A stretch of DNA of 64,000 nucleotides. Origin: Paragordius varius (Eukaryota; Animalia; Nematomorpha). The notes under the pieces were generated by a model. It was not told the DNA's origin. It did not search any database and saw only the letters and a program-made list of their open reading frames with translations. The position numbers and the translations under genes were made by a program. This document shows positions 8,401-64,000 of the stretch, one piece after another. The number at the start of each line of letters is the position of its first letter. Positions within the stretch are counted from its first letter, which is position 1. Where the stretch lies: contig OZ176054.1 in NCBI GenBank assembly GCA_964247055.1, positions 8,618,001 to 8,682,000 on the forward strand, given 5' to 3'.

Positions 8401-11400
8401 TATGTACTTTAATGAAATAAATTTTAAATTTACAAGAATGGCAGTTAAATAAAGTTAAAATTGTTGTCTAGTGTAATATTGATAAATAATAACCCTATGA
8501 ATTCTAGTCGGTTAAATGTTTACTTTGTATTTTATAAGAAGCTTTAAAATTATAACATAGCATTTGATATTCACCGACTTAAGAATAAACCATTTTTGAT
8601 TTAATATTAACTAATATATTAAATGAATAGGATATAATAAATCTCGTATTTAACTAAGGCACAATATTATTTCATTTGCATTCTATTTGTAAAATTAAGA
8701 AAAACCGTATCATTACTATATTCATTTTAAAGAAACCTCTTTACTATTGAAAAATAATAATTCAATTTTTCATCTTATTTTTACAATGTTTCCATTCTTA
8801 TAATAAGGTTTAATCGAAAATATCAATAGTCTGGGCTTCTACACTGACTGTATTATGTAACATATCAACTCTCTTTATTATATTGTTAGGTGGGACAACT
8901 TTCAATTAACGACATGATGGGACTCTTCTTAATATTAAACATCTACCGTATAAGCTCAATAAGCAGACGAGTAAATACTAATCGTCTGCTTTTAACATCA
9001 ATTATAACTGCAATATAATGTAATAGAGACAATAATTTATTAATATAATATTTATATGAAAATAACATCAAAATAAATCGATGGTAAAAAATTCCATATT
9101 TAAATCTTTCTTATTTTGGGCTCGTAATTTGTGTTTAAATTCATGGAAAATACACTCAATAGGGTTTAATTGAGGTGAATATGGTGGCAAAAAAATTAAA
9201 TTTTCGAATTCTTTATTTCGAGAATAACGATGAATAGGGGCATTATCCAAAATTATATAGGATGTTGAAGGTATTATTCTAAAACATTCCTGTAAAAAAT
9301 GATATATATCATCCCCATTGTATGGGTCAGATTTATATTCATATTTTATCATTCTGTTTATTCCAATCATAGCCAAATAGTTTAATTCAGATGAAGATGG
9401 CGATGACGGTGAGAATGATGGTGAGCGTATAATTGAACGATTTTCTGTGCAATCATCATAAAATTCTAAAGGTGAAATAATATATTACCATAGGTGTGAT
9501 CCATTAATAATTACTATAGGCCGAATAAAGAGTATTAAATATAGATAATGTTAAAGTTTATTAAAATTGATTAAATTAAGATGAAAAGATTATGGATACA
9601 CGTAAAAAAATATTAATTAGTTAATAATTTATCATAAATTAAATTTGATTATATTTAAGATGAAAAGACTATGGGTACAAAAAGAACAAAATTATTAATT
9701 AATAAAATTAATAAATTTCGAAATTTGATATGTGTACTAGGTTTTTTGACAGGCGAGCAATAGATTTATACATATATTTAACGTATACATATTATTGGTA
9801 GTCTATTTACTTTATTTTTTGTTCCCGTTTGGCGATAGTTGCGTATTGATTAAAACATCGAATAGTTAAATTTACATTTTTTTTATCTTACAACCATAAC
9901 TAAATATTTAAATACGGCCAAATTTATTTTATGTTATAAACTACTGTATTATCATAAGACATAAGTCAAATATAAAAATGGAATTAGGTACCGAATATGA
10001 GTTCATTTTAATGAACGCCCCTGTCAAAAAACCTAGTACACATATCAAATTTCGAAATTTATTAATTTTATTAATTAATTATTTTGTTCTTTTTGTACCC
10101 ATAGTCTTTTCATCTTAAATATAATCAAATTTAATTTATGATAAATTATTAACTAATTAATATTTTTTTACGTGTATCCATAATCTTTTCATCTTAATTT
10201 AATCAATTTTAATAAACTTTAACATTATCTATATTTAATACTCTTTATTCGGCCTATAGTAATTATTAATGGATCACACCTATGGTAATATATTATTTCA
10301 CCTTTAGAATTTTATGATGATTGCACAGAAAATCGTTCAATTATACGCTCACCATCATTCTCACCGTCATCGCCATCTTCATCTGAATTAAACTATTTGG
10401 CTATGATTGGAATAAACAGAATGATAAAATATGAATATAAATCTGACCCATACAATGGGGATGATATATATCATTTTTTACAGGAATGTTTTAGAATAAT
10501 ACCTTCAACATCCTATATAATTTTGGATAATGCCCCTATTCATCGTTATTCTCGAAATAAAGAATTCGAAAATTTAATTTTTTTGCCACCATATTCACCT
10601 CAATTAAACCCTATTGAGTGTATTTTCCATGAATTTAAACACAAATTACGAGCCCAAAATAAGAAAGATTTAAATATGGAATTTTTTACCATCGATTTAT
10701 TTTGATGTTATTTTCATATAAATATTATATTAATAAATTATTGTCTCTATTACATTATATTGCAGTTATAATTGATGTTAAAAGCAGACGATTAGTATTT
10801 ACTCGTCTGCTTATTGAGCTTATACGGTAGATGTTTAATATTAAGAAGAGTCCCATCATGTCGTTAATTGAAAGTTGTCCCACCTAACAATATAATAAAG
10901 AGAGTTGATATGTTACATAATACAGTCAGTGTAGAAGCCCAGACTATTGATATTTTCGATTAAACCTTATTATAAGAATGGAAACATTGTAAAAATAAGA
11001 TGAAAAATTGAATTATTATTTTTCAATAGTAAAGAGGTTTCTTTAAAATGAATATAGTAATGATACGGTTTTTCTTAATTTTACAAATAGAATGCAAATG
11101 AAATAATATTGTGCCTTAGTTAAATACGAGATTTATTATATCCTATTCATTTAATATATTAGTTAATATTAAATCAAAAATGGTTTATTCTTAAGTCGGT
11201 GAATATCAAATGCTATGTTATAATTTTAAAGCTTCTTATAAAATACAAAGTAAACATTTAACCGACTAGAATTCATAGGGTTATTATTTATCAATATTAC
11301 ACTAGACAACAATTTTAACTTTATTTAACTGCCATTCTTGTAAATTTAAAATTTATTTCATTAAAGTACATAATTAGTATATCTTAAAAGAGAATTGGTC

Positions 11401-19014: not shown

Positions 19015-19445
19015 ATGTTTGGGTCTTTTTATTTTCCTATTACATTAAACTATGCAACATGCTCACAAATAATTTTACACCCTGATAACAAAGTCAATGC
19101 AAATATCTCTACAAATGGAATTATACATAAACCTAAATATAGGGCTAAACAATGCAAATACAAAAAATCATCTTTACACGAAATTATTGATTTAATTAAT
19201 AAACAACCTAAAGAAGCGCCCCCTTATACAGCTTCTATTAAATATGAATGGAAGCGTTTGAAAAGCAAGTCTGGGAAAATTTTTTACAAGAAGTAAATTA
19301 TAAATTATGTTTTAGTCATTTGGGTAAAAGGTTTTTTTCGATGGAAGAAATTGAAACATATATAACTAGTCCTAACACCTGTAAATGTGGTCTTCCCAGT
19401 CCTTTAATAATAGAAAAATATTTTGATTTTAAACCCGGTTTTTAA
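19015..19445 (+). CDS. Compact MBD5/MBD6 (sba)-like methyl-CpG-binding-domain protein, ~135 aa from ATG 19015
   Basis: Exons 19015-19292 and 19316-19445 joined by a 23-nt GT-AG intron give EWKRLKSKSGKIFYKNHLGKRFFSMEEIETYITSPNTCKCGLPSPLIIEKYFDFKP. This matches the MBD5/6 pattern W.R....G..Y....G......E....Y......CKCGL..PL......F.F.P. True start is uncertain. Confidence 0.8.
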
Positions 19446-34300: not shown

Positions 34301-37300
34301 TTAAATCAACAGGGGCCAAAACCAAAAGCTTTATGATAATCCTGATACTATTTATACCAGAATATATATAAAATATCATCAGGATATATTAATACCCCGG
34401 AATTTCGGGCGCAGTGAAGAGCCATTGCGTGAAATTTAGCTTAATTATTGAATGTGACTTAATTATATTAAAAGTACCATGAATGACAGATATTTTAAGG
34501 GAATCAAATTTTTTGAAAACGATAATTATAAATATGATGATGGGGTGAAATGCCAAAAATTACAATGCGAAACGATCATTAATTTGAACCACGATTTACC
34601 TTATTTCCATAAACTAAATAGGCCGAGAGATTTTTTACTTTAGAATCACACTCGAATTTTTCTTTGTAAAAAACACATAGTAAATATATATTCTTAATAC
34701 AAGTTCCGTTTCGTAAATATAAATCTAAATTTTATAAAATTTACAACTTATAAAAAGCTCTTAAAATTTGATTATCCTACATTTAATTTCCGTTTTCTAT
34801 ATTACTACATTCAATCGTTTACATAAGCTTTAACTGCTAAAGGTAAAAATTTGCAAAATTTCTACTTTTCTTCATACAGATTTCGTAAATTAAAATCTTT
34901 CGATTAGGAAATGGGCATCTGGAGCAAGGATTACATTCCAAAAGGCACTCGGTTTGGACCTTTGGAAGGCAAAATCTTTGAAATTCGAGACGTTCCAAGA
35001 AATGTTACTAGAAAATATTTTTGGAGGGTATTTTTTTAGATTTTGAAGGCATTAATATGAAATCGATCACACATATTTTCAATATATTATCTTATCATTA
35101 GATATATGAGGAAATGGGCTTCATAAAATCCAACATATTGAAACATTACATTGATGCATGTGATGAGGGAAATAGTAATTGGATGCGTTATGTCAATCCC
35201 GCTCGTAATATCAAGGATCAAAATCTAGTGGCCTGTCAATTAAATTACAAGATATTTTTCTATACAATAAAACCCATATATCCCGGAACCGAATTATTGG
35301 TTTGGTATTGTCGGGATTTTGAAAAGCGATTAAATGCATCCATGTTTCTCTATCTTCCAAACACAGATCTTATAGGTCTTCATGGCATAAATGCCGTTTA
35401 TACTTGCAGTCAAAACAGTGGGAACAATGCTCATTCAACCATTCACACATTTTTGTGTGATGACAATACCAGTTTGGTTCCAGCCACGACAAGATCAATC
35501 TTTTTTGAGCGGTTACACAAAATGGATGCAAATTTACTTTCTGGCAATGCTAGTAGTAATTATATATACCCTATCCCGCCAACAACTAATACCGAACTTT
35601 GTCTAAATAGAAGAAGAGATGGCACAAGCCATTTGAGATCACCTAAAGTACATAATTTTTCGGACACTATACCAATTTTGAGCTTGGGTCTGACAACAGC
35701 TCAACATGCTTGGGATTCTATCTACCAAAATCAATATCAAAGATTGATGAAGTTGACAACCCTTACCACACTCACTATGCCAGATCAAACAAAGAAACTT
35801 TTTTCCTCCCCATTGTTTCATTCTCAATTAAATGGATTGATTATTACGCAAGGTTATACAAATACCACATCCACAAACAATTTATATAGCAGTGAATATG
35901 CTGGGCTATATGTAACTACTCTCTTTAATGCTATGCAAAGTAAATTTTACTTGTTATTATCGAATCCGAATATTTTAATATTATAGATATTGTAAAAACA
36001 TAAAGGGAGACTTTTAAGGTTGCCAATACATCAAGTGTATAAAATACATTTAAAATAGTCAATGCACAAATTGTGATATAGATAAGAAGCAAATATTATT
36101 GACAATCATTAATTTTAACATAAAATTCATAATTTTTGTTGCTAGTATACATCAATGATATTGAAAATTTTATATAAAACTACTCAAGGCAGGATATTAT
36201 TGTTAAATTTATGAACCTACGGTATAATGCCCTAAAAAATATTTTTTACATTTACGGAATATTAACTAAATCAAAAAATCGCATTTTTTCGCATATTACG
36301 TCAGAAATAAAACTTTTGGGAAAAGCAATAAAGATTACAATTTATTTACCTTTAAAGATATAATTAAATAACTTATTCTCCAATGTATAAAACTATCAAC
36401 TCAATTTTTTGAGGTTAAGATAAGCGAAAATTTAAGACTAAATATTTTTTGGCGGTATTGATTTGGATGTACTAACTAAAAACTATATTTTGTTATTCTG
36501 ATCAAATCGTGCAGCACAAGGCACAAAATAAGGTTAATAAAATTATTCTGTTAAAATTTATACATTTCGTAGAAAAATTTATCGGAATGATGCTTTTGGT
36601 TAAACCCTTACGAGTTATACTTTTTGCCAATTGTTCCATATCGTAATTCGTATATTCGCGCACACATGTTTTTTTCGGTGAAAGCTAAATTATTTTATCA
36701 AAAAATTTATAAAAATATATGACAACCTATATTTAATCGCACAATATCTAAATTAAATTTGGATTTTATATACCAGGCAAAATTTAATCATTAAGGCATA
36801 TTATACCATTAAAATACAGTTTATTTTATTATCAAAATCCAGAAAGTATTAAATATTATTGCAAAATTAGATTTGATGGGACTTTCTAGATCTTATATAA
36901 AAATTAAAATTTAATATAAATCCTGTTTTGCCTATATATATATTATATTATTTCAATAAATTTATGCAATTAGCTTCCATTAAAATAAATATTTCATAAT
37001 ATGCGCTAATTTTGCTATTTTCGATACTTATTTATTATCATGAAATTAATAACTTGACCTGTAAGGTTAAAACCAAAAGCAACGCAAGCCTCTATCTATC
37101 AAAATATTTTTACGTGCACTTTTATGCAGTGTCTATATAAAATACACTGATGAAATAAATATATTCTGATAGAAAATTGTATCAGGATTAACATGGTGCT
37201 TTTGGCTTTGTGGCGAGTGATTTAAGAAATTACACTTTTTGATAACTGTTCCATATCAGAAAAATGATTTGCGCAGATTTTTTTAAAATTTTTAGTGAAA

Positions 37301-40300
37301 TCCAGCTAATTCCCTCGAATATCACTAAAATTGACCATACACTACATGTAAAAATCTAAACATTATTTTAAAATTTTTACTTTTAGATGTGGGCTCCGAA
37401 AGTGTCAAATTTTTGGACCCATCCAAAATGAGCAAGTTCTTTTAATATAAAGGCGGGGCCGAGATTGTGCATTAAAAAATAAAAAAAATATACCGAATTT
37501 TTAAATACAGCAAAATTTTGGTAAAGCGAGTTTTATGGTATTATGAAGCAGGGGAATGAAAACACTTTAAGATTATATATGAACACTTTTTCTATATAAT
37601 CGATGATGCTGAACAATTTTATCACCTCGGAATTCAATAAAGTTCGTATGCTTTTGAATTTGGGTTAATTTTAATAAAAAAATAATATGTGCATAAATTT
37701 GGAGATCAACGATTTGATTCTAACTTCTGAAGTCATAGATGTGTTCAGCATCATCAAATTATATAGAAAAATGTTTATAATAGCGTTTTTATACTGTTTC
37801 TGTCATGCAAAATAATACGGAGTACAATAAAATTTCGCTAAAAATAATTTTGAACAAAGTGTGTATTTTTTCGAAAATATGTTTTTTATTCCAAAATTCA
37901 GCATATTAATTTTTATCGCAACTCGGATTTGCGTATATTACAAGAGCTAAAAAGGCATCACTATAATCCTGATATTTTTCTCTCAGAATTTATATATTTC
38001 ATTGGGATATTATTTTATGCACCCCGATATGACACAATGTAACTATATAACACTTTATATTCACTTCCCTTAGAAATATTAAAAATGTTCTTAATATGAG
38101 GCATATCAAAAACTAAATATTCTTTTTAATGTATTATAATTTTAACAAAAATTAACATTTGACTGCATAGTTTCATATGTATTTCGACTCGTCCTAATGT
38201 GTAAAATTTGGCTAATGCTTTATAGTTACTAATTTAATCTTTACTAAACTAAAGCTTTTAGCTATTAAATGATATACCTTAATTATAGTGTAAATATTAA
38301 TTAATGATAAAATATGGGTTGTTGTAGACACTTAATTAAGTTTTGTAATCAAATCACCATACATTATGATTTTTGACCTTGCGCGGTACCATGTTCAAAT
38401 AAAATTAATATTTGTTTTAGATAATGCACACAAAACATCATGTGTTAATCACTTAATTGAGCCATTGATGCCAAAATCGGCGATAGCTAAAAACTGTCAA
38501 GACAATGATACACACCTTGCCCCATCAGAAGAAGGTAAAGACACCTGTAAAAGTTTTAAACAATCCGATTATGGAGTGGTGACAACTATAAAACAAAAAA
38601 TTTTATCCATCATAACAACTTTATCTCACCCTACTACCGTTTTTACAAACTTGTTAACTAACAATTATAATAATAATAATAGTAATGAGAATAAAACTAA
38701 GCATACTAGAGTATTAAGCGATTCAGATGATAGTGTTGTCGATTCTAAAAGTACAGTAAATCATGATGTAGAAGAAGGAGTAATTGATTACAGCCTGAAG
38801 GGTAATAAGAAAAGATTGATTACAACAAAAACGAATTCACATGCAGCAAAACCACAAGAGGATCCAAAGTTAGATGGTTTACTCTCCCTTTCGACACTAA
38901 ACTCCAACTATAGAAGTGTGGGTGATATACCGATGCAATTCAAAATATCAGAAATAAATGCTATATCTTTTCCAATCATAAATCCGGTTTTAGGTTCTTC
39001 TCCCCATTATATATTCATGAACAATTTATGGCAATACACAAGGCATTCACCATTATATAATTTAAACTTTCTTAAAACTGCCACTAAAACTTCCAATGTC
39101 CATAGACAAATATCTTTTTTAAATAACACAATCACAACAGAAAGTTTATTAATAAAAAACGAAACTGTCACAAGTGAATCACCTGACGGAAGTTTCAAAA
39201 ACGCAATTAACCCTCAAACCAATTTTCATGAAAGCGATTTTATCAATCATAAAAGCTTTGAATCCAAATTTAATCCCTTGTTGGGGAGAGATCAACTTTT
39301 TTATATTAATAACAATAAGCAAAACTATGGAAGCGAAATTTCACCACTATCTGATTTTACTCATCAATCCAACGACGGCTCATTTGGTGAGAATAGTCCT
39401 AATCGCAATGAATTAATTATAAAAGAGGGTATAAATTTTCTAAAACAATTTTCTAACTCTGATCATTCAACTCCTGACAAATTTGAAAATTCTAAAGAAA
39501 TGCAATTGCCTTTAAAAGACACCATTCAAATAAATAAATTAAAAAATGGTTACAATGATAAAACTCAATTCAATCCTCCATCAACATTATCCGCTTTACA
39601 TAGAGCTAAATATGGGGAGTTATATTCTGAAAAAGACCAAAGCTCTTCCGCAAACAATTCAACCCAATTGATTCCAAAAAAACGCGCCTCAATTAATGAA
39701 CCCAAAAAAACAATTTACAATTGCCATATATGCTCCAAAACATTTGGACAATTATCCAACCTAAAGGTACATTTGCGTACACATTCTGGTGAACGTCCCT
39801 TTAAATGTGATCAATGTGGTAAAGGATTCACTCAATTGGCCCATTTGCAAAAACATAACCTTGTACATACCGGTGAAAGGCCTCATGAATGTTCTTTATG
39901 TCAAAAGCGGTTTTCTAGCACGAGTAATCTTAAAACACACCTACGATTACATAGTGGTCAAAAGCCGTTTCAATGCACTGACTGTCCAGCTAAATTTACG
40001 CAATTCGTTCATTTAAAATTGCACAGAAGGTTGCACACAAATGAACAAGGGGATGATTTGTCAACCTATAACGAGACTAAAAATTTTGGTAAAAGCTTTC
40101 ATTATCAGCATTCTCGATCAAACTCAATGAGTTCGAATTCACCCAATAAATCAGATGAAGGATTAGGAACTACAGACACCGAGAAAACATTATCGCCACA
40201 AAATGGGATGTTCTTAAAAAATCCAGTAACAAGGTAATTTAAGAGTTTTATTCACACTTTTGTAAATATAGAGAAATAATACAGAAAATTTTTATTATTT

Positions 40301-50200: not shown

Positions 50201-52244
50201 GAGGGCGAAAGTGTGTTCACACAACCAAACTCTCCCAGTGCTGTGACAAAGGAGGAATTTAAAGAAGATGCTTGGGATGAAAAAAAGGATGAAAGCAACT
50301 ATATTAAAGCTATCGATACAATAATCCCCACAAATAACAATAATATAAATGAAAATAATGAAAAAAATGATAGCGAAGAATTGAATCGCAACGTTTCACC
50401 AATTAGCCGTGAATCGCTGAAAAATGAAAGTAATGCGAACGATACTAACATAGAAAAAGCAACCACGCCTCAACTATTAAGTCCTTCAAAAATGACAAAT
50501 GAAATTGAAGGTTCTCAACAAGCAACTAATCAGTAAGCATTTTAATATTATATAACATTCTTATACTTGGATTACATCACTAAATTTTTTTATTATTCAA
50601 CGCTACATAAATAATAAATGTAAATAATCTTTTTTTGTTTTATTAAAAACATAAAATATTTATTGTGATATAATTTAAATTTTATTTGATATATAAAATT
50701 TTACATTCGTAATGGCATAGGAGTTAACAGCAATTTACGGAACTATAACAGTTTTTTAACATAATTAATAAATTGATTTCTTTTTAATTATTTTAAGTAA
50801 AAATTATTTTATTTGAATAAAAAGGGTATTTGTTTGGATTTTTATAAACTTGTACCTTCTATTAATGTTAAATTATATCACAATGGTTTCTTGAACTATG
50901 CGGGGCTAAAGTACATAACTAATATATGACTAAAAACAATATATACGTGTTTTAAGATATAATTTCAAATTTAACCCAGTAAACGGAGATAAATAATTAT
51001 ATAATAAATGTTACATTTATTATAAACTTTCAATAAATATACAGCGAAGATGAATGCACGCTTAACGACAATGCTGACACTTTTCCTTTGCCACACGATA
51101 CGCGTAATTTGATTGGAAAAATCTTAACACCAAACCTTTATAGTCAATATAATAATATCATTTCCAAGAATGGAATTTCATTGGATAAATGTATTAGACC
51201 TGGAGTTGATAACACTCAATTAGTTGATCCGTTTTCACCAGGTTATAATTATTTTGTTTTTAAAAATTGAAATTGTACACGTAAAACGAAAAAAAATAAT
51301 ATATTTTTATTACTTATAATTTAGGTTTAAATGTTAAATCGGTTCGGAAATGTTTAATAATGAAATTTTTAAAACAATATTAAGTTCATACAAATACAGT
51401 TTAGAGTCTCTTTTTTGCTTTTTATTATAAGGACTTAAATTGTATCCGGACTTGTGAAGGCTTTAACACTTGCCTTCCCAGGGCTGACAGTGATGATGGA
51501 AAAATTGCGTAATTTCGGGATTCGAATGCCTACCCTATTATACCATCACGCCTTCAGAAATTTCTTTAATATCAATTATTAGATATTCAAAACGTGTATA
51601 TTTGAGATATTTATAAAGGCAATTATATAGTCCAATTTTCTTGGCTAGTGTTTTCCTCGCCTCTTCTTATATTGATTATTAATACAACTTTTATACTCAC
51701 TTTTAATATTTTAAAGTTGGTTATGTACATATTCATATCATAATATTATTTTTTATTTTTTGATTATCGTTAGACTTAATAGCACTTGAAGCGGATTGTT
51801 ATTATACGTTCAAATCAGTTTTTGATGAATACATCAGAGCCCAACAACCTAAATTTCAACAAAATCTTGACCAGCGTCCTAACCTAAACCATGTACCTTT
51901 ATTGGCTTTGGACACTCTCCCGCCCATCAGATCTGCCAAAAGGATTTCCATATCATTTTCAAGAAATATTGCTGGTTTTGCATTTCCAGCGGGCACAAGC
52001 CGAATCGAAAGGAGACAAGTTGAAAATATTATTTGTTACGCGGTCAATAGCATTGGACAAACAAAAGGTATTTTGTTTTTTTCATTATGAAGTGGCAACC
52101 AATACAATAAGAAAAATTTTAATTTTTGCCGCAATCTTTTTTATTTAGCAATATCTGAAAAAAACTTTAAAATATAAATTATTTTTTAAAAATACACTTC
52201 TTACATGGATTATTATATGTTTTTTTTCACTTACCATAAAATTT

Positions 52245-52280
<36 letters not shown>

Positions 52281-55200
52281 CGTCTTTGATCTTAGGGACC
52301 TATTACTCCTTCATGCATATGAATGATGATTTACGACAAAAACTAAATCTTTTCAATATAACGAATATTGCACCGCCTCTCTCATATGAAACATCTCAAG
52401 TTTGGTCTGATTGGCCAGATTCACGCGGCATTTGGATAAACGAAGACGAAAATTTAGCCATGTTAGTAAATATAATTGATCATATGCAAGTGCTGGCTTT
52501 TAACAAGGGTATTTATTTCCCCATCATATATATATAATATATATTAATGTGACCAGATAAGCTTTTTTTCGCAGTACAGTACTGAGTTTTCGAAAAAAAC
52601 CTGCGCCTGTACTGCCCTGACTTTTGTACTGTTTTTAATTTTTTTGAAATATATTAATTACCTTTATTTATATGAAAAAATTAATGTAGAATTTTATATA
52701 GTATTTAAAAAATTTTTTTTGGTAAATATTAAGATTGACCTATTTTTAATTGGTTTAAATTCTATTTTTGATTGAGTTATACATGAAATCGGGTTTCAAA
52801 CCGGTAAAACCGCTTAAAGGCAATCGAGCAGTGGCGGAAATAATTCTTTCAACTGTAAGATTTAAGCTAACGACCCTTTAACTCAGGGTTTCCGCAAAAG
52901 CAGCCTCAAAATATAAAATAAACAGAAAATGAATTCATAATATTTTAATAATAATTTGACCAAATTTAAAAGTTCGATGTTAGTTTCATTTGTTTCGGTT
53001 AATTGTGGGATATTTTAATTGTTTCCAATAAGCTAATAAATAGTAAATAACTATATCATCTGATAAACACCGCAGCAAAGATCTGGTTTAAAAATAGGCA
53101 AGGTATTTTTTAATTTTGCACTGCGCCAGGGTTCTAAATATCTGGTCACATTATTAAGAAAGCTGTTATTATAGGCCATTTGAGTATATTAAATGGCTAT
53201 GGGATTTGTGTTAAATTTCTGTTGCCATGTTAAAGATTTTTTGTTATTATTAGTAAATTTAGAAAATTGAGGATTAAAAACAACATGTTCAATTAAATAT
53301 ATAACTTATAATATGAATCTCATGGATAGCACCAGACACCTAAATCAAATCTACTTTTAGCCGCTTAAAATACTGAAATGTCTTATAATAATCTCTCATG
53401 TATTTTATTGCCTTATGATTAACTAAAGTTTAAAAAATTTTAATGTTTTAATAGATTACTCCATATCTCAACCGTTTGTCCAAGCTAGTCAATTCGTGAC
53501 ATCGATGGAAAACGCTTTGTTACAATTAGGTTACTGTTATGTGTGGAGCTTTGAAAAGGGCTTTCTAACAACCAATCCCAACCTGACTGGTACAGCTATG
53601 GTTTGTCAAGCAGCCATTGTAGAAAATGGGCCAACCATCGATGAACTCTGTACATTGTACAATAATACGGGCTTGATTAATGAAAAGATGAGGCTTCATT
53701 TTAGCTGTAATAATGATCAAACATGTGTTCACTCTTTACCATTTATGCCGATTCAAGAGTTAGAACAATATTACAACTTTATTATATTATTGGCTTGTCA
53801 CCTATCGCAATCATCGAATGAAACATCAAATGGATGGGAATTTGTCAAGGATTACAACTTATGCTTGAATGAAAATACTGAAAATGAGTACAATATGCAA
53901 TATCCTCTTCTAGTTCGCCAAAACAATATTTTAGCCACCATACTTACCGTGCAAAATTATAAGGAAGCTAAATTGTTGTCGCGAGAAAATTCTAACAATC
54001 GTCATTTAAATTTTGACACTCTAATTCTACTGGGTAAAGAGGATATATTAAACCAATCGCCTTATCCCGACGGAATGTTATGTAGTAATTTAAGGGCATA
54101 TACCATCTATGAAGATTTGATCAATCAACTTATGGATCAAAAAGAGCTTAGGGCCTATGAATTCTGGAAAAAATTCCAAGATTTATCCAACATAGACCTT
54201 GATATGAAATTTCCATTCGATAATTTTATTTCCGATTGCTTTATAATGTCTGTTGCCAACTTGGAAAATTTTTCATTTGTGCCTTTTATGAGTGAAGAGG
54301 AATTGCTGCAGATATCCTCTGATTCTGAAGTTATTTTTTCATCTATTGAACCTAAGATTGATGGAACATTTTATGATAATATTGACCATAAAAGTATCAA
54401 TAAATTGGGTGCAAAGACATTCTTTGAACCATATTGGGACGAATCAAAGCTTTTATTTAACAATTGGCCAAAAGGGAGATGCGTTTGGATATCTAAAGAT
54501 GAATCCATAGTTTGTTGGATTAATGAAACAGATCATTTTAAAATGTTTGCTTTATCACAAAACCAAGGAATATATAAATTATGGGAACGTTACACTCTTA
54601 TTACAAATGTACTTAGACAAAAATTGATAACGGAAAAAGCAGGCAAAACCGAAATTTTATCAACTTTCCCCTCAACAGCTACCGCTGAATATTATGTTGG
54701 TTTCATTGTTAAAGCCAAAAACCAGAATATAAATTATCTAAAAAATATCTTCTACTTCACAGGATTTCAGGTTGTGAATGAACACGTAAGTAATGGAATG
54801 ATAGAAATTTGGCTAATTGATCAGGCCACTGAACTTCCAGAAGATGCCAACGAGGAAGACAAAGCCCAAAATTATCTTAAACGCATGAATCTTATGCTCA
54901 CAAAAATTTCATATTTGCGATTTATGATTAAACATAGTCATAGTGCAGAAATACTCGATGATGCATTCCGTGAACTTAAAGTAACCTGTAACACTATGGA
55001 ACAAACAGAAAATAAACCAATGTGTAAAGACTTATTGATAAAAAACTTTAATAACTTTCCAACCATTACAAACAAACGTACGGCTTTGGCCAAATCATTA
55101 ACTCCTGAATTATATGCAGAGTTAAGTGAGTTTAAAACTTCGCACGATTTCACGCTTGATGATTGTATCCAAGTTGGTCTTAACAATCAAAACACATATT

Positions 55201-56225
55201 TTTCGGGTTTTATCGCTTTCGACGAGGAATGTTATGATTTATTTGGCGAGATAGTTGATAAAATATTGGAAGTTTACACCAAAGATAGAGTCACCACACA
55301 TCACATAATAAAGGAATTATCCTTTTATCCGGACACACTTGAATCCTTTGATGATGAATATGTATTTTACATTGAACTTGGTGTTATTAGAAACTATGAG
55401 GGGTTCCCTTTAATAGCGGGTTGTAAGTTAGGCCACTTTCACAAAATGGAAGAAATGACAAATAGTATTTTGAAAGGCATTTCTTCACAAATAAAATGTA
55501 CGCCATTTTCATCGATTCCCGAGGAATCGATTGATACGTTTCTAACCGAATATTATGGTACTAACTCAATCATTCATTTTTCCCCGCAACTCAAAAAATA
55601 TTGGCCACGATGTCGCGCAAAGCAGGCCATTGTATCAAAATGTTTTTCACAAAGAGACCTAGAAACAAATAAAATATATACATTGTTTGCTAATGTAGAG
55701 GATCATGTACAATGTTTTAGCACATTACAAAACATGGATATCTGGACACAGTTCAGGGAATTCCATAAATTCATTTATGCACTTGAGAATGAGCTTATGG
55801 CCCAGTATAAACTTTCATTTATGAAGCATGATAAATATGGTTACGTAACAAGTGACCCTATAAACTTAGGTGCAGGTTTTATCCTCCGTTTAAGGCTAAA
55901 ATTACCCAATTTCATAAATGTTAACCCAGCGAATTCTAATACCAAAATAATGCCAAACAATAACTTGGACTATGATATTACCAATATGAATGATATTAGC
56001 AATGAAAAAATGGATAGTATAACAGTAATTAAACGTATCGTAAGCCATTACAATATTAGAATAGTGAGCTGGGATGATCCAATATTAGAAATTATAAATA
56101 GTACATGTTTTGGTTATTCAGAAGTTGAAATAATACAACAAATGATAGATTGTTGCAAAGATCTCATACGTAAAGATATGGAATCTCAATTAACCAATGA
56201 ATCATCAAACGATAATCAAAAATAA
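47265..56225 (+). CDS. Three-domain creatine-kinase-like (ATP:guanido phosphotransferase) protein, predicted catalytically inactive, ~1538 aa
   Basis: Exons 47265-47322, 47693-47976, 49160-49415, 49989-50532, 51045-51241, 51774-52067, 52296-52508 and 53455-56225 join in phase (4617 nt). CK-type motifs: ILTPNLY..ISLDKCIRPGVDN, SRIERRQVE, DWPDSRGIW, SLTPELY..FTLDDCIQVG, GYSEVE. Confidence 0.88.
52545..53153. mobile_element. MITE-like element in the last intron of the kinase-like gene
   Basis: 15-bp perfect inverted repeat taatgtgaccagata (52545-52559) / tatctggtcacatta (53139-53153). Target-site duplication ambiguous. Confidence 0.5.
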
Positions 56226-58285: not shown

Positions 58286-59879
58286 TTATTTAACCCTATC
58301 GAAAAAAAAACAAAAAATATACCTTCCTGCTAAAAAATTTAATATCCCTGCTATTTTCTTAAAAAAATCATCATTTATAAAATATGTAAAATAAGGTTAA
58401 CATCGTATCAAACATTGCAAAAAATAATAAAATAAAAAAAATGTAATCAATAAAACCGGTTCCGGAACCGTTTTCGAAATTTTCGGTTTTATATCGATCG
58501 GTAGCATAATAAAGTTAATGATGGGTTTCGTAAATGTTGGCGGTTCTAATTATTAAATATATTTTAATAAATTATTCAAAAATTATCATAAAATTTGGAA
58601 TATTATCATAAAAACAAATATTATAATTACCTTGTGTCAAAAATCCTTCATTGTCGTATACTTGTTGACCGTCCCGATATATTCTTATGTTTGGAACGCC
58701 ATTAATACCCAAGTTCTCACATGTTTGCAAATGTTCATCACAATCAATCTATTTATTTAAAGTTTAAACGAATTCAGTAAAATAAAAATTTATTGATTTC
58801 AACTTAGCTAAAACCAATCAATGGCAATCTCTAAGAAATCTATTTGATGATTTTAAACTATTTTTGTTGGAACAAAATAATTTCTGCTTCCGAATCAAAT
58901 CTAAATTATATTTTAAAAAATGTTCTACCCTTCAAATAACATTCCTTGTCAAATGTACAAAAGGTGCAACCATGTTACAATATATAATATAAAAATTACT
59001 ATACTTCGGCACAATCATCACGACTGGCACATATATCATGGAAAATAGGCAAAAAATCTTGACTATACTGGCAGCTAAAATATGTAATATGCATGGGTTG
59101 ATAAAAAATAAAAAAAATCATTATTGCTTTTTAGAAAATGCTATCGCGACTGAAACCTAAACTTTTACCTTAACTTTTATGAAAATTGTAAAGTTGTCAT
59201 TCTTTTTGTCGACAGAGTGGTTGAATGATATACGTTACTGAATAAAATTGCATTCTTAATTATGGAAAAAGGATTTGTTTTTAAATAAAGCAGATCATTA
59301 TATTTTATAATAGAAACGCAACATATTTAGCCACCACTGAGTGTTAAACCCACAACGGTTTGACAAAATACATTTTTTTTGCAATATGTAAGCGTGATAT
59401 AAGTCGAATATATAATTCTTCACATTTGATAAACAAATAAATATTTCCCAGGTTTAAATTGACAGCTAGTTTCAAATTCTCACAGTATACTTTTATTAAA
59501 AAAAGGGGATTAGATTTAAAAAATAAATTTTAAGCCTGAAATAAAAAAACGTTCAAGCTCATTATTGAGCTTTCTTCGTATAATAATAACAGAAAAAAAG
59601 ACAAAACATATGTTTTTGGTAAAAAAAACAGCCCCCTAACTTAGATTTTCGCTCTGACATAACAAATTTTACCATATATTATAATTAATTAAAATAAATA
59701 AGAAATAAATAGCTTAAAAGTTACAACAAATACCTTTCTCCATAGAATAATACGATGGCTTTTGCATTGTTTGCTATAAAATTTTCCAAATTTGATCTTG
59801 TATCCAATTTAGTAATCGTACCATCAATTCTCTGTAATAGCAGAATAACTAAAAAACAACCAAAATGCCAAGAAACCAT
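58286..59879 (-). CDS. Signal-peptide, single-domain thioredoxin/PDI-family protein with CxxS site, 123 aa
   Basis: Exons 59879-59734, 59074-59005, 58748-58631, 58350-58323 and 58295-58286 join in phase: MVSWHFGCFLVILLLQRIDG-TITKLDTRSNLENFIANNAKAIVLFYGESCQYSQDFLPIFHDICASRDDCAEIDCDEHLQTCENLGINGVPNIRIYRDGQQVYDNEGFLTQAGILNFLAGRVK. Confidence 0.82.
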
Positions 59880-62244
59880 GATTAAAAATTATTGTTAAAT
59901 ATTATTTGATTACATTTAGCTTTATTAACAAAGAACATTAAATTAAGAATTATTGGCAGAACGATCAAGGGCACATAAACCATAAAATTTATATAACCGA
60001 CTTCGATTCATTTTTTGCAGTTTGTTTTTTGGGTCACACGTTTATTCACACTATATAATGTATAACCATAAATTTTTATGATTGAAATAAAGTATAAATC
60101 CAAAAAATCATAAGTTATTAATTTTACTCGTCAATTTGTTAACATGAGTACGATTAATTTTGTCATACTTCATAACTTAAAATAGCATAATACAATCATA
60201 TTTAATTACTTTTTAGCAATAGGGAGTTAAAAATCTTAGCCATATTGGCAAAGGGGCATTTTAATAATTTTAAATAGAAATTTAGGAAAATTAAAAATTG
60301 TATAACAGCGAAAATAAAGATAGCCGATGATATGGCTGATATTGTCTAAAGCTTATACATTTATGAATGTGTAGCCATCACTGACAAAGTTAAAAAATAA
60401 ACTGAACTAAAACTTAGAAAAAGGTATAAACGACATTTCAGAAGTACTGAAAACGTGTAGCCCCATTCAAATTAAATTAAAGCCTTTTATGTTTACCCAG
60501 AGCCTAACAAAAGTTAACCTCTGGGTTTAGTACCACTCGGAGTTAGAGACGCATAAAATGCCACAAAAGGCAAATTCTAAATTCCTAACCATAAGTATAT
60601 TATTCTTACACTTGGATAATTACATTTGAGAGAACGGGTAATTAAAACGATTTTTTGGAGACTAGACTTTTATAAATTAAAGAATGACTATTTAATTTTG
60701 AGCAGAGCGTTAAACTCCAGAGTCTATCCGAACTCAGAGATGGAACTGGGAAAAAAATTAAAGCGCCACTGAAAATTGTTAAATGAAACAATTTAGCATA
60801 TAGAAGGTTTTTAAATTCAATTTTTATTAACCAAATTGGTCATCTTAATCACATAAGTATCAAAAATATGTAATTAATATCCGTTTTTTATGCGTGGTAT
60901 ATAAATATTAATGTGCACTGCCCCTAAATTAAATTAATACAATTTTAGGCATGTTTGGGTATGTCAAATAATCTGTTCAAATTTAAGATTTATATTTTTT
61001 CTTTACTTATAAATGCGTCGGCCGTGGTCGAGTCCTTTTTTAAATTAGTCCCTTTGTTTAACACCTCCATCAAAAATAACAAAAATTTTATTTGAAGCAA
61101 TTTTTCGGTAAGCATATTAAACCAAATGTATTATTGGTCATAAATATTTTTATAAAGGTGATAACCTCTTTCTCATAAATTATCCCTTTCACATAAAAAA
61201 TCTTGTCATTGAGTTATTGGGAAAATGTTTAGGCGCATCAAATTTAAAAGTGGACTATGTAGGAATAAACGTCGGGGATTTTGAATTAGCCGCTATGTTG
61301 AAACACTACCAGGTAGAATATGAGCTTTGCTCAATTTTCATAAGGTTAAAATAGTATATTTGTTATAAATATTTTAAATAAAGGAGCTGAGATTATCAAC
61401 AATAATGAATATAATATTCCGATAAATATATATATTTTGCTTTCATGACTTTTTTGATTTAGGATACATTTAACGTAATATTAGCGCACGCGGTTAATTT
61501 ATTATTTAAAAATGCTTGCGCCATATCAATTTATATGTTATATAAATATTATAAAAAAAATTATTATATTGACTTTTTAATCCGAAAGTTAAAAACCCTT
61601 TAAAATCGAAAGTTTTTTTAGAAAAATTTAAAAAACCCGACATCGAGAGATAGAATTAAATCTAGATTTCATCGCTTAATTGCAATTAAAGCGGAATTAT
61701 CTCAAAAATATTTCTTATATTTACACTAAAAGTCGTATTATGCGCTCTTCCTAAACAAAATGAATGTATTTTACAATGATTTGCTATTTTTTGTTATATA
61801 TAAAATATTTTTAAAAATGAATAAAAAATTAATTTTTCAAAAAGGATATTTTTTATTTTTTCATTTTTAACAAAAATTTAATAAAATATTATAAGGGATT
61901 AAAACTGTTTTAGCTGGTAGCTTGATCCTATACAAATAAAGCCGCAGCATGAAATCCCCATTGGAATATTTTACGGGAGTATTAAAATTTTAATTTTTCA
62001 AAATATTATTTATTTTTTGGGATTCGGCCTTCCGAATTTTAAAGGTAAAATAAAAAATAATATTTTATTTTTAAAAAATAAAATTTTTTTATTAAATAAT
62101 TTTGAATAATTTTTAAAACTCTGAACAAGCATCCAAAACTTTTTTGTAGATTGTTATGGAAAAGAAATTGAGTTAATATGTTATTTTAAAACACTTGCTT
62201 ATAAATTTATAAATGCGCTATGACTGTTAATTGTATAATCTAAG

Positions 62245-63812
62245 GTGTGCGTTATTCCTTTTAATAAGGTAAAAATTGTTAACCAGAGATTTATTTCATT
62301 ATTGTATTTTGGACCATATTATTACTTTAACATGTTTGCCGAAACTTTGGTATACAGATTCAAATCCAGAAAAAATGCTGAAATTAATAAAAGTTTAATT
62401 ACTGATGTATATGGTCAATCTGTCATTATTTTGTAAATTATTTTTAATTTTAGATGTACAAACGATATTTTGTTTATATATTTCAATAATAACATTTACA
62501 CTTGCTCAATCAATTGTAAAAATCAGTCAACATATGTGAATAAAGAATGTACACTTTACCGTTTTACGGTAAATGGTAATTCTTTATCATTGGAAAACGT
62601 TGGAAAATTTGAAAACAATAAAGTTAATAATTTTTTATTTTAGTTTTATTTTGAATATTTTATCATTACAAAACATGAATTTGGGTCTAATATAATTCAA
62701 TTGTCGTCGGTTAACAATCCTGATAAACTTGGTTGTTTTGCTTGTAATACGGACAATAATATATTTTTGATTGATTGGGATGGTAATAATTTAACTCAAA
62801 ATAATTTTTCTGTTGTTTCACTGAAACCTTCTACGACTTTTATGCAAAATATTTTCAAAAGGTAAAATATTATTTAAATTTTTTAGTTTAAATTATTGGC
62901 CCATTTTTGATAAACATTGTATTGTTACAACTTGTGTGTCTCCCTGTACCACCCTAATTGGACTTATTACAATGACAGTTGCTGATCTATCCTTAAATAT
63001 CACCACAATAATTGGTAAAAAATCCGAACAAAAGGGGACCCTATGTCAAATAAAATGCATATCCAACCCCAATAATTCCATTTCGGCATCAATTAAATTA
63101 TCCGAATTTATACCTGAACTATTTTCGGATCAAACTGTGGCCGATACCAAATCCATGTTATCAGATTTGAGCGAAAACATTATACTTAAATGTGAACAGT
63201 TGCATAATATGTTAATCATTGTTTTACCATTGTTTGTACAAAAACAAAATTTGTTGAATGATATTGATGTGGATAATAACGATACACTGTCAAACATCAT
63301 ACTGCTTTTTAAAATAAGGAGGGTATCCCTTACAACTACTGTTTCCGAAGATAATTTTATGCCGTACACTTTGGAACATTATCAAACGCTAGAATACCCA
63401 AATGATGTAAAAAGATTTTTTTAGTTTAGTTTAACTATTGATTCTTTTTCGAAACAGTTTGCTTCGGCAAAATTATTATATGATATAATATTTTTATTGG
63501 GGTGTGACAGACATATTTTAGTGTATTTGTAGATTTTTTAAAAAAGTTAAAGTGTATATTGTATCGCCTTTGAAGTATACAAAGAATATGAAAAAATTAT
63601 ATGGCATGGCTTTAAACACTTTTAATCCGTACTTTTATTTGATTTCTCTCATTTTCGCACAAAATATTTTTAAAATCATATATTTCCTATAAATTATTTT
63701 TTTAGATTGATTGCATAGACGTATCGTTAATAGATGACAAATCTGAGCTCAAATTATGTATACTAGCCTTAGCTTCCAATGGAAGGAATATTACATTAAC
63801 TATACCGATTAG
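62245..63812 (+). CDS. Beta-strand-rich (propeller-like) protein, possibly divergent Nup155/Nup170; both ends uncertain
   Basis: Stop-free exons 62245(or 62332)-62432, 62454-62622, 62644-62861, 62887-63406, 63425-63520 and 63706-63812 join in phase. GCFACNTDNNIFLIDWD and IDCIDVSLIDDKSELKLCILALASNGRNITL loosely resemble Nup155 propeller segments. The coding status is strong; the family call is weak. Confidence 0.6.
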
Positions 63813-64000
63813 GTATCTACTATATAGTATCTTTATAAAATTATAATTTAAACATTTAATTATTGTTAAATATGAAAAATAACGATATGATGATCACGAT
63901 TTTGCTTTGAGCTCATGACTGAAACGAAACTATTAACTGATCTATTTTTTATTTTTTTTATAAAATATTTGATATATATTAACTATTTTTGTAATATTTT

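Follow-up and report, generated by a model that had tools for sequence, protein, structure and literature searches.

Three segments of 21, 21 and 25 nt in a gene of the hairworm Paragordius varius are very probably real ultra-short introns. We put at about 0.8 the probability that they are genuine U2-type GT-AG introns. The gene would then be protein-coding, with four exons or more on the + strand of the window (the whole 64-kb stretch of DNA that was analysed), and would have these three introns grouped within its 5′ third. At these lengths, and in an animal nuclear gene, they fall within the animal class of introns shorter than 30 nt.

Intron 1 (62433-62453, +; 21 nt) has the donor GTAAAT and the acceptor TTTTAG, while intron 2 (62623-62643, +; 21 nt, phase 0) combines the same acceptor with the donor GTTAAT, in which the T at +3 is unusual. 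Intron 3 (62862-62886, +; 25 nt) has the donor GTAAAA and the acceptor TTTTTTAG. All three carry the ends of U2-type introns, GT at the 5′ side and AG at the 3′ side, around interiors that are 100% A/T, for a GC content of 8-10%. Since such an interior contains no competing G, each intron offers a single possible GT and a single possible AG. An earlier sequence-only reading had placed the segments at these positions, with the same letters and lengths, and had called them nearly pure A/T; both statements agree with our inspection.

That reading had also proposed that each segment breaks the frame if it is kept, which is what we find. Intron 1 lies within a split codon, two bases of which are upstream, and its retention brings an in-frame TAA directly past the donor G. 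Retention of intron 2 gives an in-frame TAG at its 3′ end, and retention of intron 3 causes a frameshift (25 nt is not a multiple of 3) together with an in-frame TAA. When the three segments are removed, a script count gives 341 codons from the ATG at 62332 to the TAG at 63422-63424, with 0 internal stops.

The four exons of this model are all on the + strand. Exon 1 (62332-62432) begins with its only in-frame ATG, at 62332 and not at 62333, and hence has 101 nt, corresponding to 33 codons and the two bases of the split codon. It is required for the start, because exon 2 (62454-62622, 169 nt) and exon 3 (62644-62861, 218 nt) have no in-frame ATG before the end of exon 3. Exon 4 (62887-63424) comprises 535 nt, to 63421, followed by the TAG, and lies inside a stop-free frame of 199 codons, which is by a wide margin the longest open frame in its part of the window and, by arithmetic, far beyond chance at the local composition. 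This frame is open for 49 codons 5′ of its first ATG, which fits an acceptor at 62886.

To evaluate the linkage of the exons we used a dynamic-programming chain search, which starts at the first codon of exon 4 and extends in the 5′ direction to an ATG, with at most three GT..AG segments, each 18-32 nt long, skipped on the way. The search returns exactly the three introns described above and the ATG at 62332, with 489 coding nt. It also yielded a fourth upstream "intron" (62226-62244, 19 nt, with a first exon of 6 nt), which is probably spurious. Chains of at least 489 nt occurred in 0 of 1,000 and 2 of 10,000 sequences simulated with a Markov-3 model trained on the window, and in 0 of 10,000 sequences simulated with a Markov-2 model trained on the local region 62100-62886. 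This indicates a chance probability of about 2e-4 or less for an open three-intron chain. In the real window, where 14,373 AG anchors on both strands were evaluated, this length is reached only here and in four long ORFs (at 19.9, 35, 38-40 and 54-56 kb); no other chain exceeds 414 nt.

The composition of the segments leads to the same reading. Segments of 18-33 nt with the form GT[A/T-only]AG number 27 on the two strands of the window, against 21 expected, and only three of these, against 0.65 expected, have at least 30 open codons on both flanks in a continuous frame; these are the three introns. From the ATG to the stop, the longest A/T-only runs (23, 19 and 19 nt) are the three intron interiors, and the next one has 14 nt. 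The chance that all three runs would be bounded by GT..AG on the + strand is, by arithmetic, about (1/16)^3.

Exons 1-3 taken singly mean little, because DNA of 27% GC is rich in stop-free frames of 45-85 codons; outside the known genes of this AT-rich window there are 249 of them. It could thus be argued that exon 4 alone is a gene (for example with 150 codons from the ATG at 62972), or that the locus is silent, and that the upstream exons and their GT..AG links arose by chance. Chains of 300-414 nt with two or three pseudo-introns do arise by chance in about 15 places of the window, and exons 1-3 have no homolog behind them. Against this, the chain test argues directly against a chance linkage of the upstream exons, open flanks are found at no other of the pure-A/T GT..AG segments, and the exon 4 frame continues well 5′ of its first ATG. 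Codon usage, scored as a log-likelihood trained on four identified exons of two neighbouring genes (a PRDM1-like gene and a kinase gene), points the same way. Exons 1-3 combined score +0.017 per codon. The null, into which real exons also enter, is −0.09 ± 0.078, and the combined score exceeds 91% of it, while each exon alone is only in its top 6-11% (exon 2, +0.03 per codon). For exon 4 the score is +0.074 per codon, a value reached by only the top 3.6% of the null and close to the 0.10-0.12 of the training genes. The codon-usage signal is modest, with a direction that favours coding, and we regard chance linkage of the upstream exons as quite improbable.

The reading with three mini-introns also has to be weighed against other splice sites for the same gene. 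At junction 1 the pair that defines intron 1 is the single frame-keeping GT..AG pair within 12-80 nt. At junction 2, two other donors, 62599 (45 nt) and 62569 (75 nt), can be joined to the acceptor of intron 2 with the frame open, and at junction 3 a 79-nt segment (62783-62861) also leaves the frame open, with the poor acceptor CAAAAG. The gene could therefore be a real spliced gene in which one or two junctions use longer introns (62569-62643 or 62599-62643; 62783-62861), so that only some of the mini-introns would exist. These longer pairs preserve the open frame just as the short ones do, and ordinary introns of 74-166 nt, with a GC content of 16-22%, are indeed present in the neighbouring genes; the GC content of the extra stretches (24%) is uninformative between exon and intron. 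However, the extra stretches are stop-free in the exon frame over 18 and 26 codons, for which the joint chance is about 0.02 by arithmetic, and the 18 codons that would be lost at junction 2 with the 75-nt alternative have a coding score (+0.115 per codon). The 79-nt alternative, besides its weak acceptor, would turn a 23-nt pure-A/T run into coding sequence, whereas A/T-only runs in exon 4 and in the kinase ORF do not exceed 12-14 nt. Junction 1 has no longer-intron alternative in the range tested. From these features we judge the longer introns at junctions 2 and 3 less likely than the mini-introns, and unlikely overall, although they are the strongest of the competing proposals.

A further explanation is that the segments are not removed from RNA. 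The locus could be a recent pseudogene, damaged by two stops and a frameshift, or the segments could be excised from the DNA, as are the internal eliminated sequences of ciliates. Frame logic alone would be compatible with DNA excision, given that at each of the three junctions a TA..TA deletion of 15-39 nt can restore the frame. Yet all three defects fall exactly within pure-A/T islands bounded by GT..AG, with the frame intact everywhere else, and we know of no precedent in animals for the precise excision of short DNA segments. We therefore consider this explanation very improbable, and retain the reading as spliced mini-introns.

The product of the gene was searched for in several ways. No match was obtained for any exon in Pfam at E values up to 10, for exon 4 in a word search, in the ESM Atlas, among PDB sequences, or with phmmer (exhaustive HMMER) against 1.84 billion representative proteins. 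With tblastn and blastn, neither the exons nor the gene had a paralog or repeat copy elsewhere in the window, which also gave no Rfam or tRNA hit. The single-sequence AlphaFold model of exon 4 has a pLDDT of 30 and is unusable. By these searches, the gene is an orphan or is evolving very fast. The sequencing runs that contain the stretch look DNA-like, whereas its words are almost absent from small runs that are putatively RNA. The case is weaker than cases found in conserved genes, because it has neither orthology nor RNA support. The sequence-only reading had presented the three introns as the strongest internal evidence for a minimal-intron class, which is overstated for an orphan gene. Its proposal that they are minimal introns is nevertheless supported by the chain statistics, the uniqueness among pure-A/T GT..AG segments, the longest A/T runs, the single solution at junction 1 and the coding-like codon score.

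The length of 341 codons holds if translation ends at 63424. A phase-0 GTAAAA donor at 63407 can be paired with the AG at 63424 (18 nt) or with the AG at 63705 (299 nt), or may stay unused. The 299-nt pairing leads to an open exon of 36 codons (63706-63813, +), which closes at a GT donor and has a score of +0.003. We rejected the 18-nt candidate intron (63407-63424), since the 35-codon extension that follows it scores as non-coding (−0.124 per codon). No AATAAA or ATTAAA is present in 63400-64000, and the gene may extend past the end of the window.

The window has a GC content of 26.8% and is animal in content, encoding PR-domain/C2H2 (PRDM) and phosphagen-kinase proteins. It uses the standard genetic code, and a Paramecium-type code is excluded, because there are long open frames here without TAA or TAG. 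The multi-domain phosphagen-kinase-like gene (51767-56183, +) has a 909-aa ORF and introns of about 166 and 900 nt. Its best match is an unnamed protein of 1106 aa from Gordionus sp. m RMFG-2023 (40% identity, 98% coverage), the only match with E ≤1e-10 among 8,000 candidates scored, and alignment of the gene to this protein reveals ordinary introns only. The PRDM1/Blimp-1-like gene (34908-35983 and 38336-40234, +) has a PR-domain exon at 34908-35027, followed by a 74-nt intron (35028-35101) and by 35102-35983, with its large C2H2 zinc-finger exon 2.3 kb downstream. The ERp44-like thioredoxin-domain gene (about 58575-59888, −) has introns of about 660 and 250 nt, and its protein has a signal peptide and, where CxxC would be expected, a CxxS-type motif (Cys-Gln-Tyr-Ser).

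In these three conserved genes, whose introns range from 74 to about 900 nt, no mini-introns were found, for the PRDM1-like gene from its PR-domain exon onwards. The typical intron of the window thus does not have a median below 30 nt, and mini-introns are a minority class here. Two other places in the window have short GT..AG segments. Head-to-head inverted, near-identical ORFs of 138 aa (9071-9504, −, and 10269-10702, +) are DDE_3 (PF13358) transposase fragments, and the 23-nt GT..AG near the start of each, identical in the two, is probably coincidental. At 19293-19315 (+) there is a 23-nt GT..AG candidate with two interior G and no C, between 99 and 42 open codons; its retention leads to a frameshift and a stop, and its flanks have no Pfam match.

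As to how such introns might be processed, we propose that the whole mini-intron would be recognised as one unit by U2-type splicing. The short donor would consist of GTA or GTT followed by AA, the branch point would be the adenosine that follows the donor at about 15 nt and precedes the 3′ end of the intron by 7-11 nt, and a T run of just 4-6 would precede the TAG acceptor. All three introns do have an A at +15 from the donor, then T4-6 and AG, although in only three A/T-only sequences this arrangement is indistinguishable from chance. The sequence-only reading was accordingly fair in reporting no obvious branch-point consensus. Between the A at +15 and the 3′ end there are 7, 7 and 9-11 nt in introns 1, 2 and 3, so that the distance from this A to the AG rises with intron length. 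We infer that unspliced mRNA would be non-productive, as any retained intron would bring an immediate in-frame stop, at the TAA of the donor in introns 1 and 3 and at the TAG of the acceptor in intron 2. The principle of in-frame stops on intron retention has been described for the tiny introns of Paramecium.

If the three introns are real, one spliceosome would handle a distance of about 13 nt from the 5′ splice site to the branch point alongside normal introns, and the gene would provide a system for asking how the metazoan spliceosome copes with this spacing. It would also add a lineage-specific gene to the class of introns below 30 nt. Common aligners and gene finders have a minimum intron length near or above 20-40 nt, and such genes would consequently be split, truncated or dropped in hairworm annotations. 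Standard tools would then systematically truncate or miss genes of this kind, lineage-specific ones included, and this may contribute to the low BUSCO scores and the apparent gene loss that have been reported for the phylum. The genome paper of Gordionus montsenyensis reports a GC content of 26.9%, similar to that of the window, and a BUSCO completeness of 71.6%, and makes no mention of introns.

In a survey of 51 animal genomes (2026), introns below 30 bp were observed only in myxobolid myxozoans and in Dicyema japonicum, both with compact parasite genomes, and Nematomorpha are absent from its main text (PMC13644364). In the literature we found no report of introns below 30 nt in hairworms. 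On balance, we lean towards the view that horsehair worms, or a close lineage, represent a third independent animal origin of spliceosomal introns below 30 nt. Unlike dicyemids and myxobolids, they would keep such introns as a discrete 5′-proximal class, next to ordinary and kilobase-sized ones, and would do so in a genome that is large and rich in repeats. Such a lineage would make it possible to ask whether introns can become this short only in compacted genomes, all the more as the mini-introns would share 64 kb with introns of 74 nt up to about 900 nt.

Tiny introns are also found in Paramecium (about 20-34 nt), Stentor (15-16 nt) and the nucleomorph of Bigelowiella natans (18-21 nt). The introns described here share with them the size range, the very AT-rich interior, the GTA..TAG ends and the in-frame stop on retention. 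In contrast, Paramecium and Stentor are protists and the nucleomorph is the reduced nucleus of an endosymbiont, and tiny introns are the only kind that they have. A Paramecium-type code is excluded for the window, which uses the standard one. The introns of Stentor are also cited in the survey of animal genomes (PMC13644364).

Among animals, there are two published cases of comparable introns. The myxobolids with ultra-short introns (Henneguya salminicola, Thelohanellus kitauei and Myxobolus) have medians of 22-27 bp, and their short introns are the genomic norm, are clustered within genes and have a few A residues that lie further upstream of the AG in longer introns (PMC13644364). Like these, the three introns are animal GT-AG introns below 30 nt, with a donor cut to about GTA, no real polypyrimidine tract and clustering within a gene. 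The longer distance from the A to the AG in the longer intron is also a feature of the myxobolid and Dicyema mini-introns, though the likeness is drawn from three sequences, too few for a consensus. In the myxobolids, however, the acceptor is a bare AG, whereas here a clear T4-6 precedes the AG; short introns are the norm there in a compact genome, whereas this window is gene-poor and its other genes have introns of 74 nt up to about 900 nt; and the lineage is cnidarian there and an ecdysozoan hairworm here. Dicyema japonicum, the second published animal lineage with introns below 30 nt, has reduced splice-site motifs (PMC13644364; PMC6736024). Compared by description, it differs from the hairworm in being a spiralian with a compact genome and uniformly short introns.
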